From positions 146,832 through 210,831 of the IMG/VR virus record IMGVR_UViG_3300044630_006293: DNA of 64,000 nucleotides. One strand, given 5' to 3'. Under the pieces are notes generated by a model. That model made no database searches, had not been told where the DNA came from, and saw only the letters and a program-made list of their open reading frames with translations. Each line of letters starts with the position of its first letter. Position 1 is the first letter of the stretch. Shown in pieces: positions 6,471 to 9,535 of the stretch. The translations under genes were made by a program, and so were the position numbers.

Positions 6471-6497
6471 GGACAGTTTATCTACATGTCCAGGTAG
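6471..6497 (-). ncRNA. H-type pseudoknot motif copy 1
   Basis: CTAC-CT-GGACA-T-GTAG-ATAAAC-TGTCC; covaries with copies at 9428 and 9509. Confidence 0.55.
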
Positions 6498-6502
6498 GAA
6501 CC

Positions 6503-7540
6503 TCAGAAAGGAAGTTCTTCGTCAGTGTCATCAACACTAACAGCGTTTGCAGCAACACCAACAGGAGTTGATTCTGCACGTGCTGAGTTCTTCCACAGAT
6601 CGATAGCAATAGACTTGTTATCTACAACCATGGTAAAACGACCACAAGGTGCATTGACTGCAGCGTACTGATCTTTAGGAACCAGATTGCCACCTTCATC
6701 AACAGTGATGATTTGTTGAGCGCCAGCCCAGTTAGTTGTCCATTGACGACTCATGTTGCCAATAGCCTTGATGCGGTCTTCAGCTTTCTTGACTTTAACC
6801 TGTGACCAGCTTGTTTGTGCTGCGAGTTCAGCTTTAAGCAACGCTGCTTCTTTACGAAGACGAACGATACGACTAAACTGATCAACGCTTGCATCAACGA
6901 GGTTCAAGAAGCCCTGACCAGTGCGAGACTGATTACGGTCAACAGTACCAAGTTCAAAGCTGGTAATAGGAATGCCTGCTTCGTGAGCATATGCTGCTAC
7001 GATGTTTCCGCGATTCTGCATTGTACCAAGAACGTCAACGGCACCTGCAGCTTTAAAAGCATCAAATGCGTGTTGGATTCCTGATTCAGATGCACCAAAT
7101 TGCTGGAACAACAAGGGCATACCCTCATTAAATTTCAAGCCAATGCGTGAAGCTGTATCGAGGAACGTTTGTTCGTCGAGTGGCTTAGCAGCAGAAGCAT
7201 TTACAGTTGCGCGTAGCAATTCAGGTAAAGTCATTGTTTCACCATCAACAATAAGCTCAACTTCCATCTTTACAGGCTTGAAAATACCAGTAACGATTTT
7301 GTAAGTTTCACCAGTGTATGGGGACTTTTGCTGAATTACGCTCATGCGGGTGAGGCTTGCTTCATGAAGAGTTGCATATGCCGGCACTTCAATACCGTTA
7401 ACGCTACCTTTGAATGCAATCCGACGACCTGCGTGGAGTGTAGTGGTACGACCAGTAGTCTCAAAGACTTCAGGTGTATCAGCTACGGATGAGAAAAGCT
7501 CGGCATCAAAACCAAACTTTGAAAGTATGTTATTGCTCAT
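6503..7540 (-). CDS. hypothetical protein with SSB-like acidic C-terminal tail (possible ssDNA-binding/recombination protein)
   Basis: 345 aa ending DDTDEELPF. Confidence 0.6.
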   Translation of the reverse strand: MSNNILSKFGFDAELFSSVADTPEVFETTGRTTTLHAGRRIAFKGSVNGIEVPAYATLHEASLTRMSVIQQKSPYTGETYKIVTGIFKPVKMEVELIVDGETMTLPELLRATVNASAAKPLDEQTFLDTASRIGLKFNEGMPLLFQQFGASESGIQHAFDAFKAAGAVDVLGTMQNRGNIVAAYAHEAGIPITSFELGTVDRNQSRTGQGFLNLVDASVDQFSRIVRLRKEAALLKAELAAQTSWSQVKVKKAEDRIKAIGNMSRQWTTNWAGAQQIITVDEGGNLVPKDQYAAVNAPCGRFTMVVDNKSIAIDLWKNSARAESTPVGVAANAVSVDDTDEELPF

Positions 7541-7569
7541 GATATAAATATTCCTTTTTGTTGTGTTTC

Positions 7570-7770
7570 TTACTGTTGTGTTTCTTCAGCATTGTGAATA
7601 GGGGGCTGATTCCCCTTTTCTTTGGTGGAACCGCTAGTTTCAGCGAATCCAGCTAAGAACTCATCTTTAAGACTCTTGCTCGTTGAAGCTGTCTTATTTG
7701 GAAGTGACTTTGCACCAGCGAATACTTTGCCAGTAATAGAGCCAATTTTCTTAGATGTAATATTCTTCAT
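7570..7770 (-). CDS. hypothetical protein
   Basis: 66-aa ORF with AGGAG RBS. Confidence 0.65.
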   Translation of the reverse strand: MKNITSKKIGSITGKVFAGAKSLPNKTASTSKSLKDEFLAGFAETSGSTKEKGNQPPIHNAEETQQ

Positions 7771-7951
7771 GTGTTTCTCCTGTGTTAATTATCGTAAAAA
7801 GAACCGAATAGTGTATCGAGTAGGTCTAGTAGCCAGTCAAACATTTAACGTTTTCCTCCATTTTTAGGTCCCCTTTTCTTGAATGAACCTTGAATGTAGA
7901 GAACGCTTAGAAAAGATACTAGACCTACTACGATATATATACTTAATGTGA

Positions 7952-8119
7952 TCATGCAGAGCGTTTAATTTCGCCAGACAAGTCCTGATCATAAATACGA
8001 ACAGGAGCAAGGTTGACGCGTTTACGCCATTTGATTGTTCCATTAGCTAGTGCGATGTTTAGAATGACTGATTGTACAAAAAGTAAACTAAACATTCCGC
8101 TGAAGTACCAATACCACAT
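7952..8119 (-). CDS. small membrane protein (55 aa)
   Basis: TAATG coupling with upstream gene; MWYWYFSGMFSLLFVQSVILNIALA hydrophobic N-terminus. Confidence 0.55.
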   Translation of the reverse strand: MWYWYFSGMFSLLFVQSVILNIALANGTIKWRKRVNLAPVRIYDQDLSGEIKRSA

Positions 8120-8418
8120 TAGACTGATTCCATTTCTGCTATTTTAATGCTATTGTTGTACCATTCGACTAGTGTGTTACCTATTTTTCCGTAGCGGGTA
8201 ATGTTTTCGTTGTAGCCGGCGTAATCAATAAAGTATTGAGTACCATCCATAAGCTCAATTTTAACTTCACCATGAGTAGTATGATCAATAATCATAAGAG
8301 CGTTTAGATTCATGTCTAGGCGAATGTAAGCTTGACCACCGTTGTAGTGATAAAGTCTATATTCTGCTGCAGCAAGGTCAATAAGTTCCAATGATTGTAG
8401 AAATGTAATCTTATTCAT
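8119..8418 (-). CDS. hypothetical protein
   Basis: 99-aa ORF with AGGAGG RBS. Confidence 0.7.
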   Translation of the reverse strand: MNKITFLQSLELIDLAAAEYRLYHYNGGQAYIRLDMNLNALMIIDHTTHGEVKIELMDGTQYFIDYAGYNENITRYGKIGNTLVEWYNNSIKIAEMESV

Positions 8419-8532
8419 TATATTCCTCCTGATAGTTAGTTTATTTTTTTGTTACGAAGCCGGCGATGTATGCACCGAAGATGCGTACGCGTTGGCTAAT
8501 TGCAATAATAGTATTTTTAATGAAAAACATGA

Positions 8533-8634
8533 TTATTTATGCTTTCTTGAGACGAGTTTGTTGCCGGCAAAGTAACCGATAACGAAACATATTGTTGTTA
8601 TAAGGATTGATATATTCTTCTTTAAGTTATTCAT
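8533..8634 (-). CDS. 33-aa single-TM micropeptide (followed by a 29-aa ORF at 8441-8530)
   Basis: AGAAAGG RBS; MNNLKKNISILITTICFVIGYFAGNKLVSRKHK. Confidence 0.45.
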   Translation of the reverse strand: MNNLKKNISILITTICFVIGYFAGNKLVSRKHK

Positions 8635-8725
8635 TTTGCCTTTCTTGGTTTAGAATAAAAATAAAAGTGAGTGGCTAGTAAGACACTAACCACCCACTGA
8701 TATTTGTGGAGGTGCTCGCAAAATG

Positions 8726-8956
8726 CTAGTTGCCAAACATTTTATCCCAACATTTAGGATGTATGCCTGTCATAAAGATTTCACGTTCATCTGGACCTAG
8801 GAATGGGAAAGCGTCTTGAATAAGAAGAGTTCCAGAATTCCAAGATTCATACTTAGATTTATCCACAATAATTTTATTATCTTCCTTACATACATAGCAT
8901 GCAGGTGATGTAACAATAATTGTATCTGTTGAGTTATTTGAGTAGTTATATTCCAT
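8726..8956 (-). CDS. small Zn-binding protein
   Basis: CYVC...IQDAFPFL..DERE..MTGIHPKCW. Confidence 0.7.
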   Translation of the reverse strand: MEYNYSNNSTDTIIVTSPACYVCKEDNKIIVDKSKYESWNSGTLLIQDAFPFLGPDEREIFMTGIHPKCWDKMFGN

Positions 8957-9198
8957 GTTAGTCTCCCTTTTCTTGGGTAGTTTGGTTTATGTACTTTGGG
9001 TCCTATAGTTTTTAAAACATTTTTTTAGAATATTTAGCTCCGCGTGTCTTGAAGTTCACCGAGAACTTAAGCATACTGCGAAGCATTTGATTATGAAGTG
9101 GCTCCGGAGGAGTCGCTGATTAATCAAAACAAAAAATAGGTATTAGTACTCCCGCAGACCAGAGTTGCAAGTCCGCGAGAGTACTAATTGGGGGATAC

Positions 9199-9357
9199 CT
9201 ATTTGGTTACGAATTTCCATTTAATGGAATCTAAGATAACCATGTTATTAATAACACGAGCAAAGAAAGGATCAGCTTTCCGCGCGTTGATTAGAGCAAT
9301 CTGTAGAGTCTGTGACGATTCTTCAGACATTAGCTCACGGATAGGATATGTATTCAC
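9199..9357 (-). CDS. hypothetical protein
   Basis: GTG start at 9357 after GGAGG RBS. Confidence 0.5.
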   Translation of the reverse strand: MNTYPIRELMSEESSQTLQIALINARKADPFFARVINNMVILDSIKWKFVTK

Positions 9358-9421
9358 GTTGCACCTCCTAGTGCTACTATGGGAAAGTCGCAAAGGACAA
9401 TCCCCTTTTCTTGGGTAGAGG

Positions 9422-9535
9422 GGGGTTGAGCAGTTTTGCGCAGAGCATACTCAGGCTCCGTCTGTGCATTTTACCAAGGACTACAGATATCCTTGAACCC
9501 CGTCGGGTAAGCAGTTTAAAGACATACTCAGGTCT
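9422..9535 (-). ncRNA. tandem pseudoknot element
   Basis: Pseudoknot copies at 9509-9535 and 9428-9458, a further CAAGGA/TCCTTG + TCTGT/ACAGA knot at 9461-9495, GGGGTT/AACCCC closing pair. Confidence 0.5.

Follow-up and report, generated by a model that had tools for sequence, protein, structure and literature searches.

The three small RNA folds examined here are copies of a compact H-type pseudoknot that many uncultured phages place just after stop codons, often directly before a tRNA or a tRNA-like RNA. The pseudoknot matches no family in Rfam 15, and literature searches found no description of it. As a tentative reading, inferred from sequence and genomic context alone, it may mark and protect the 3′ ends of phage messages. 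The copies lie on the minus strand of a 64,000-nt stretch (the window; positions 146,832 to 210,831 of IMG/VR record IMGVR_UViG_3300044630_006293) of a 210,831-bp phage genome.

A compact pseudoknot after stop codons

An earlier note on this sequence had described three recurrent pseudoknots at 6497-6471 (W1), 9535-9509 (W2), and 9458-9428 (W3), with compensating stems and fixed linkers, and this observation was confirmed at exactly those coordinates. The consensus is a 4-bp stem, CU, a 5-bp stem, one base, and an A-rich linker of 6–10 nt ending in AAAC. In W1 (type 1), stem 1 is formed by 6497-6494 with 6485-6482 and stem 2 by 6491-6487 with 6475-6471; the element starts 5 nt after the TGA (6505-6503) of a gene for a 345-aa protein of unknown function (6503-7540, minus strand) that ends in the acidic tail DEELPF. 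W2 (type 1) starts 7 nt after the TGA (9545-9543) of a gene for a 143-aa protein of unknown function (9543-9974, minus strand) ending in DDNDEPW. The strict signature (4-bp stem, CT, 5-bp stem, T, linker ending in AAAC) occurs three times in the whole genome, compared with a mean of 0.07 (maximum 1) in 60 first-order Markov simulations, although the pattern was chosen after the copies had been seen.

The site at 9535-9428 is a row of three pseudoknots rather than two, the middle one having been missed by the earlier note. W2 is followed by a small 4-bp hairpin with a GACG loop (9508-9497), read from the sequence and recovered in the MFE fold, and then by the middle pseudoknot (9495-9462), in which a 6-bp stem (9495-9490 with 9480-9475) encloses a loop, CTGT (9486-9483), that pairs with ACAG (9465-9462) across an A-rich linker. 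In seven distinct homologues, the loop and downstream tetramers change together, with three Watson-Crick variants at one position. W3 has a 10-nt A-rich linker, and its stem 1 can be 5 bp if started at 9459 (9459-9428). Its stem 2 differs completely yet stays complementary in five homologues; in relatives this copy lies 3 nt before the tRNA-like domain described below, but here none follows. Directly after W3 lies a 16-nt motif (9418-9403) that is repeated upstream of three neighboring gene starts (copies at 10034, 9418, and 8980, minus strand); it looks like a promoter or leader and marks the start of the next expression unit. A homologue of the 143-aa protein in a related phage (28–36% identity) is also followed by three tandem type-1 pseudoknots.

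Covariation holds well beyond the window. A motif-first scan of related loci gave 84 candidates, of which 74 had both stems fully paired and 21 were distinct. In 18 distinct 27-nt copies every position pairs, 6 of 9 pairs change on both sides, and the covariation score is 0.646, compared with 0.233 after shuffling (0/500) and at most 0.10 when partners are slid; W3 was left out of the counted alignments because MAFFT misplaced its gap. A pattern scan of IMG/VR returned at least 120 stretches. Of 84 distinct matches across IMG/VR, 69 pair fully and the other 15 pair at 5 of 6 free positions. The three free stem-1 pairs all form in 69/84, compared with 1/84 when the partner is slid by one, and 26 different stem-1 helices are used. 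G-U pairs occur only when the element is read on the gene strand. Rfam scans returned nothing at gathering score in the 64-kb window and nothing on the pseudoknots at E values up to 10 in stretches of 3.6 kb, 191 nt, and 56 nt. A blastn search of the 3.6-kb region found no match among 50,697 phage records, and three cultured phages with DUF932 genes have no exact copy of the motif.

The genomic position of the motif is well defined, mostly 5–13 nt after stop codons. Of 78 copies, 55 have an ORF of at least 60 codons ending within 45 nt upstream, the commonest gap being 5–6 nt. Eight of the 78, in eight other phages, are followed 7–13 nt later by tRNA-Asp on the same strand, although these eight all follow DUF932 genes and may represent a single evolutionary event. 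One is followed 4 nt later by an uncalled tRNA-like RNA, 21 are followed by a T-run within 16 nt, and 25 lie only 13–41 nt before the next start codon. Where the motif is absent from orthologous genes, an ordinary terminator occupies its place. Of 62 distinct 3′ regions of orthologues of the 345-aa gene, 40 start with a pseudoknot, 28 of those with a T-loop downstream, while another 13 start with a plain GC hairpin plus T-run, none of which has a T-loop. Similarly, phage Melnitz-2 has a plain terminator after its DUF932 gene.

The earlier note had linked the element to acidic-tail genes. This holds in the present genome, where the motif follows only two genes out of hundreds, but not in general, as the upstream genes elsewhere encode DUF932, Hsp20, DUF669, and other proteins. 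Pfam and PHROG searches returned no hit for the flanking proteins. Orthologues of the 345-aa protein in about 100 contigs all end in an acidic tail plus PF; its AF2 model (pLDDT 69) gave no Foldseek hit, only a generic helical hairpin with VIA-align, and no result in an Atlas search, and the family is not related to DUF932 (hhalign probability 0.2%). The model of the 143-aa protein was too poor to use (pLDDT 42), such that any resemblance of these proteins to single-strand-binding proteins rests on the tails alone.

The adjoining tRNA-like domain

W1 lies 6 nt upstream of a 119-nt alanine-type tRNA-like domain (6464-6346, minus strand), which the earlier note had called a tmRNA-like RNA but which is only a tRNA-like domain, resembling a tmRNA without its coding part. 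It comprises an acceptor 5′ strand (6464-6458), a long helix-2-like arm, a T arm (6370-6354) with a GGUUCGA-type loop, an acceptor 3′ strand (6353-6347) with G3:U70, and a discriminator A at 6346; CCA is not fully encoded. The MFE fold recovers the arms. An intrinsic-terminator-like hairpin plus T-run (6303-6259) would end the transcript about 40 nt past the domain. In the window's clade, the domain starts 3–8 nt after a pseudoknot. Acceptor, T-stem, and helix-2 pairings covary across 22 distinct homologues: G1-C72 and G2-C71 are invariant, positions 4 and 5 show three pair types each, G3:U70 is present in 17 of 22, and the discriminator is A in 20 of 22. These pair counts were made by script, as a covariance model of the short form was too narrow to collect the long forms.

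The Rfam tmRNA model (RF00023) aligns end to end with 6343-6464 (minus strand) at 26.3 bits, below its 47-bit cut-off, while a true tRNA of the phage scores 18.9 bits. ARAGORN calls nothing for the domain, either in the window or in 50 related loci. The tRNA model (RF00005) gives 23.4 bits against a cut-off of 29 in a relative, and the short form has no anticodon loop. A tag reading frame is also lacking, as the short form has only 37–38 nt between the acceptor strand and the T arm, and candidate frames in the long forms differ entirely while their hairpins covary. Other tmRNA architectures were considered and rejected. A search for an acceptor 5′ strand upstream of the ORF, as expected of a giant tmRNA, produced only a chance-like 9-mer inside a coding region, whereas the local acceptor pairing covaries. 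A permuted two-piece tmRNA is ruled out because the acceptor 5′ strand precedes the T arm and no coding piece follows. Phages that integrate into ssrA carry fragments of the 3′ end of the gene (PMC9004378), but an origin of the domain as an attachment site copied from a host tmRNA or tRNA gene is very unlikely, as both acceptor strands are present and covary, the invariant 22-mer of the short form is absent from 185,579 species genomes, and the T-arm/acceptor 25-mer hits only two ordinary tRNAs.

A possible 3′-end cap and competing explanations

We propose, with less than even confidence, that the pseudoknot works as a 3′-end cap for messages. In this view, it folds a few bases past the stop codon and, once the transcript is ended just downstream, leaves too short a single-stranded tail for 3′–5′ exonucleases, so that the coding part survives. 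The downstream end would be made by RNase P cleavage at the 5′ end of an adjoining tRNA or tRNA-like domain, by a terminator T-run, or by a cut before the next gene. W1 would cap the message of the 345-aa gene, and the tRNA-like domain would be released as a separate small RNA that may soak up host SmpB; W2, the middle pseudoknot, and W3 would form a triple cap behind the 143-aa gene. While the analysis establishes the structure, its conservation, its positions, and its neighbors, the cutting by RNase P, the blocking of nucleases and stabilization of the upstream RNA, and the decoy role, including SmpB binding, charging by AlaRS, and inhibition of trans-translation, are inferred. The interpretation offered in the earlier note, a nuclease-blocking or protein-binding element, is supported only in part: its structural claim is fully supported, nuclease blocking fits the context of stop codons, putative RNase P substrates, T-runs, tandem arrays, and alternative terminators, and protein binding is not excluded. 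However, several observations sit poorly with a cap. A ribosome stopping 5 nt upstream must open stem 1 each time, copies close to start codons could instead act on the downstream gene, the strictly conserved loop bases (CU, AAAC) suggest a specific partner, protein or ligand, more than a generic roadblock does, and the restriction to two genes in this genome looks gene-specific. In addition, the base before the tRNA-like domain is usually C, not the U that bacterial RNase P prefers.

Of the alternatives, binding of a specific protein, phage-encoded or a host factor such as ribosomal protein S1, is the least unlikely. Such a protein would regulate the flanking genes, for example through autoregulation by the acidic-tail proteins in the way T4 gene 32 protein binds its own message. 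The loop bases are invariant across very distant phages, both genes carrying the motif here have single-strand-binding-protein-like acidic tails, and 25 of 78 copies lie 13–41 nt upstream of a start codon; however, upstream and downstream genes are diverse across phages, copies directly before tRNA genes or T-runs have no translation to regulate, and no candidate binding protein was identified. It is less likely that the arrays and the tRNA-like domain form one tmRNA-derived molecule acting whole on SmpB or on stalled ribosomes, with the arrays corresponding to PK2-PK4. The order of stop codon, pseudoknots, T arm, and acceptor end mirrors the 3′ two-thirds of tmRNA, the pseudoknot resembles the tmRNA pseudoknots of E. 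coli in general build, pseudoknots and a downstream T-loop co-occur, and RF00023 gives its weak end-to-end match. Conversely, the acceptor 5′ strand lies after the pseudoknots, making them a 5′ leader rather than internal elements, and the same pseudoknot occurs without any tRNA-like domain (the 9535-9428 array, a locus designated L010, and most IMG/VR copies) and before ordinary tRNA-Asp; there is no conserved tag frame, and the phage has no SmpB gene.

A role as a transcription terminator or attenuator, a pseudoknotted variant of the hairpin-plus-U-tract signal, is similarly doubtful. It is suggested by the T-runs after 21 of 78 copies, by seven type-2 pseudoknots after orthologues that run straight into T-runs, and by the ordinary terminators that occupy the same position in orthologues. 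However, W1, W2, W3, and most other copies have no T-run, transcription must pass W1 to make the tRNA-like domain and must pass the pseudoknot to make tRNA-Asp, and a 5-bp second stem is weak for a terminator. A small-ligand riboswitch of the preQ1-I or SAM-II architectural class, controlling read-through or the next gene, is improbable, although sequence alone cannot exclude it: the compact fold with an A-rich third loop and invariant loop bases resembles known pseudoknot aptamers, but no Rfam riboswitch model matches even at E values up to 10 in windows of 56–191 nt, the 3′ strand holds no ribosome-binding site, the flanking genes share no pathway, and tandem copies and copies before tRNAs do not fit. 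A recoding signal is very unlikely and was rejected from the reading frames. The 5–7-nt gap after the stop codon in the window falls within the classic 5–8-nt spacing, but TGA, TAA, and TAG are all used, read-through or −1 frames stop within 4–10 codons, the extensions are not conserved, and W3 and many other copies follow no ORF.

If the cap reading holds, this 27-nt fold is an unlisted and widespread phage RNA family with unusually clean covariation. It would show how phages set the ends and lifetimes of particular messages, give a bacterial-world counterpart to structure-plus-RNase-P end formation, and offer a very small portable stabilizer for engineered transcripts. The attached domain takes the tmRNA without a coding part from a single phage curiosity to a conserved feature of a clade of roughly 200-kb lake phages, all copies of which are missed by standard tRNA and tmRNA finders. 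A bolder possibility, less likely than not on present evidence, is that phages have their own general way of making message 3′ ends, parallel to the MALAT1 triple-helix/mascRNA system, in which one cut between a conserved 27-nt pseudoknot cap and the RNase P substrate directly behind it, a real tRNA or a tmRNA-derived tRNA-like domain, gives both a nuclease-proof message and a small RNA. In this freshwater jumbo-phage clade, that small RNA would be an alanine-accepting decoy that shuts down host trans-translation.

Relation to known RNA systems

A tmRNA without a coding part, reduced to the tRNA-like domain, is known from mycobacteriophage DS6A and some plastids, and the DS6A form inhibits tmRNA in E. 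coli (PMC4131195, PMC11915505). The domain described here is likewise phage-encoded, about 70 nt in relatives and 119 nt in the window, with a G-C-rich acceptor stem, G3:U70, discriminator A, a T arm, and no tag frame. However, it scores below the Rfam tmRNA cut-off and is not called by ARAGORN, it is always fused to the 3′ region of one protein gene and preceded by pseudoknots, the window's copy has a long ornate helix-2 arm, and G3:U70 is lost in 5 of 22 variants. The tmRNA pseudoknots PK1-PK4 are also small H-type folds with short first loops and A-rich third loops, in tandem, between a stop codon and a T arm with acceptor end, a resemblance of general build. Here, the pseudoknots lie 5′ of the first base of the tRNA-like domain, also occur with no such domain, and carry their own invariant loop bases.

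Bacterial 3′ stabilizers and intrinsic terminators (terminator hairpins, REP elements) also sit just after stop codons, a terminator hairpin holds the same position in orthologues, and a T-run follows 27% of copies, but the present element is a pseudoknot with conserved loop sequence rather than a simple GC hairpin. The preQ1-I and SAM-II riboswitches share its size, H-type build, and A-rich third loop, while differing in that no model matches, the location is 3′ of genes, and the fold contains no ribosome-binding site. In tobamoviruses, tymoviruses, and bromoviruses, an ORF stop is likewise followed by a row of small pseudoknots and an aminoacylatable-looking tRNA-like end; however, those are RNA genomes in which the tRNA-like structure stays attached and its acceptor arm is itself a pseudoknot, whereas here the genome is DNA, the acceptor stem is an ordinary helix, and a terminator lies further downstream. 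The MALAT1 and MEN-beta 3′ ends, in which a triple helix is followed by the tRNA-like mascRNA cut by RNase P, offer a further parallel. There too, a compact, A-rich, triplex-prone structure lies directly upstream of a tRNA-like RNase P substrate, and by analogy cutting would leave a protected 3′ end and release a small tRNA-like RNA; the mascRNA model even gives a weak hit (18 bits) on a relative's domain. MALAT1 is, however, a eukaryotic nuclear system whose protective element is a U-rich/A-rich triple helix and not an H-type pseudoknot, and cutting by RNase P in the phage remains an inference from this arrangement.

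The pseudoknot loci and their surroundings

The window is the last 64 kb of a complete 210,831-bp virus record with terminal repeats and a GC content of about 38%, belonging to a novel freshwater jumbo phage. No DNA match was found among 50,697 phage records for the 3.6-kb region searched, and the local proteins hit almost no Pfam or PHROG family. Its relatives come from lake metagenomes, and several of those contigs are 200-210 kb long. The earlier note's observation holds, as its three pseudoknots sit exactly where it placed them on the minus strand. The first of these, W1 (6497-6471), begins 5 nt after the stop codon of a 345-aa gene ending DEELPF; the second, W2 (9535-9509), begins 7 nt after the stop codon of a 143-aa gene ending DDNDEPW; and the third, W3, is at 9458-9428. 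The strict signature occurs three times in the whole genome, against 0.07 expected.

The 9535-9428 site proved more elaborate than the earlier note described, comprising W2, a 4-bp hairpin, a further pseudoknot that the note missed (9495-9462), and then W3. In seven homologues the loop tetramer of the middle pseudoknot and its downstream partner change together. The second stem of W3 is replaced wholesale among homologues yet stays complementary. Directly after W3 comes a 16-nt motif (CTAYCCAAGAAAAGGG) that recurs before three neighbouring gene starts, so the array closes one expression unit. Copies of this motif lie at 10034, 9418, and 8980 on the minus strand, 25-60 nt upstream of successive gene starts, with a weaker copy at 7628, and it looks like a phage promoter or leader element. 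The 8980 copy overlaps a weak, sub-threshold Rfam Mu-gpT-DE hit (14.7 bits). Upstream of the 143-aa gene, at 10070-10235 on the minus strand, are two adjacent direct repeats of about 80 nt whose differences look compensatory, for example inside a GC-rich hairpin; they may be another structured RNA or a regulatory repeat.

At the W1 site, a 119-nt tRNA-like domain (6464-6346) begins six bases after the pseudoknot. It has a 7-position acceptor stem with G3:U70 and one U-U mismatch, an unpaired D-region, a long helix-2-like arm, a canonical T arm, and discriminator A. A terminator hairpin with a T-run lies about 40 nt further on and, just downstream of this terminator, a 15-nt GC-rich word is repeated twice (6230-6216 and 6175-6161, minus strand) around an A/T-rich hairpin. 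The phage also carries six ordinary tRNA genes (Gly, Arg, Ile, Met, Asn, and Leu), all on the minus strand and outside the window (113,202-139,084 of the genome), none of which is preceded by the pseudoknot.

Elements downstream of orthologous stop codons

Protein-guided scans for relatives of the 345-aa gene gave about 100 loci at 46-100% identity, and every protein ends in an acidic tail plus PF. Of the 62 distinct and long enough 3′ regions, 19 carry the type 1 pseudoknot (the form reported in the earlier note) right after the stop codon, with a gap of 5 nt in 15 of the 19, and 16 of these 19 have a T-loop motif within 520 nt. A second pseudoknot type is found in 16 regions, 7 of them with a T-loop motif within that distance, and a third, double pseudoknot type in five regions, all five with the motif. 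In contrast, 13 regions carry a plain GC hairpin plus T-run, none of which has a T-loop motif, and the remaining nine carry other elements, four of them with the motif. A pseudoknot at the stop codon therefore goes with a tRNA-like domain downstream, and a terminator goes with none. The second type (among the numbered loci, L024, L058, L061, L078, L086, L093, and others, in the first 60 nt after the stop codon) has a 6-bp GUCCGU/ACGGAC-type second stem and covarying first stems, and in seven loci it runs straight into a T-run, like a pseudoknotted terminator. The third type (L028, L066, L069, L073, and L109, also in the first 60 nt) shows compensatory changes in both helices and is always followed by a T-loop-bearing RNA. 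In the 3′ regions of L020/L033, L026, L041, and L044, a recurrent T-arm-like hairpin has a 5-6-bp covarying stem and a 7-nt loop, AYGRUUA, often followed by a further pseudoknot with a UCUAAYC linker; these modules make up 3′ RNAs of 150-450 nt. A homologue of the 143-aa gene (28-36% identical) in a related phage is followed by three tandem type 1 pseudoknots and no tRNA-like domain.

Comparison of 22 distinct cores of the tRNA-like domain showed that G1-C72 and G2-C71 are invariant. Position 3 is G-U in 17, position 4 is G-C, U-A, or G-U, and position 5 is A-U, G-C, or C-G, while the T stem covaries fully and the discriminator is A in 20. Among the four long forms, helix 2 differs completely yet stays paired. 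A short form of 72 nt has no room for a coding part, and the long forms share no reading frame. However, a different tRNA-like end occurs about 135-235 nt after the stop codon in L066 and L073, with an A1-U72-type acceptor stem and an ACCA/ACUA tail, unlike the G-rich alanine-type domain of the other relatives. The Rfam tmRNA model aligns end to end with the window's domain at 26.3 bits against a 47-bit cut-off, the tRNA model gives 23.4 bits against 29 in a relative, and ARAGORN calls nothing. The domain is not a host gene fragment: the invariant 22-mer is absent from 185,579 species genomes, and the T-arm/acceptor 25-mer finds only two ordinary tRNAs. The phage has no SmpB gene.

The pseudoknot family beyond this clade

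A single IUPAC pattern fixing 14 plain bases matched at least 120 stretches in IMG/VR. The 80 loci retrieved contain 84 distinct matches, of which 69 pair at all nine positions, while the other 15 pair at five of the six positions that the pattern left free. The pattern itself fixes three pairs, so only the free ones count as evidence. The three free stem-1 pairs all form in 69 of 84 matches, against 1 of 84 when the partner strand is slid by one, and there are 26 different stem-1 helices, with three or four Watson-Crick types at each free stem-1 position. Pair counts on the loci related to the window used copies chosen partly by their pairing, a bias that motif-first scans of the related loci and of IMG/VR reduce but do not remove. 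No Rfam family matches the fold, even in a 56-nt search.

Of 78 copies examined for context, 55 have an ORF ending within 45 nt upstream, the commonest gap being 5-6 nt. Twenty-one are followed by a T-run, and 25 have a ribosome-binding site and start codon 13-41 nt downstream. Eight are followed 7-13 nt later by tRNA-Asp, always after a DUF932 (phrog_1221) gene, giving a conserved order of DUF932 gene, pseudoknot, and tRNA-Asp(GTC) in unrelated uncultured phages (loci L117, L135, L146, L149, L154, L164, L170, and L191), although these eight junctions may descend from a single event. One copy follows a DUF669 gene, reportedly of a phage single-strand-binding family, and is followed 4 nt later by a tRNA-like RNA that ARAGORN does not call (L113, 1684-1755). 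Other upstream genes include Hsp20. The cultured phage Melnitz-2, by comparison, has a plain terminator after its DUF932 gene.

Possible functions and relation to known systems

Any account of the element must accommodate a fixed, very stable small fold, its placement just past stop codons, neighbours that create RNA ends (RNase P substrates, T-runs, or the start of the next unit), its tandem use, and its swapping with terminators among orthologues. The simplest account, which we hold only tentatively, is that of a 3′-end cap that would stop 3′–5′ exonucleases once the transcript is ended just downstream, with the tRNA or tRNA-like domain supplying the cut. The tRNA-like domain may in addition act as an SmpB decoy. 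While the fold, its covariation, its positions, and its neighbours are established by the sequence comparisons, exonuclease blocking, RNase P cleavage, and the decoy role are inferred from sequence and context alone. The earlier note's suggestion of a nuclease-blocking or protein-binding element is partly supported.

However, some features speak against a cap. The invariant loop bases hint at a specific partner, the ribosome must open stem 1 at every termination, and the motif follows only two genes in this genome. Alternatively, the pseudoknot could be a protein operator, part of a whole tmRNA-like molecule, a pseudoknotted terminator, or a riboswitch. Two further readings, a recoding signal and an attachment-site fragment, are contradicted by the tests made here.

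H-type pseudoknots, 3′ stabilisers, and tmRNA domains without a coding part have all been described previously; what is new is this particular conserved family, its breadth, its junction with tRNA-type RNAs, and a whole clade of uncalled tRNA-like domains. The nearest described counterpart of the tRNA-like domain is the tmRNA without a coding part of mycobacteriophage DS6A, which inhibits tmRNA in E. coli (PMC4131195, PMC11915505), and the proposed decoy role rests on analogy with it. The logic of the inferred cap, in which a tRNA or tRNA-like domain would supply the cut, is that of the MALAT1 triple helix with mascRNA, and the layout also recalls the row of pseudoknots plus tRNA-like end of plant RNA viruses.
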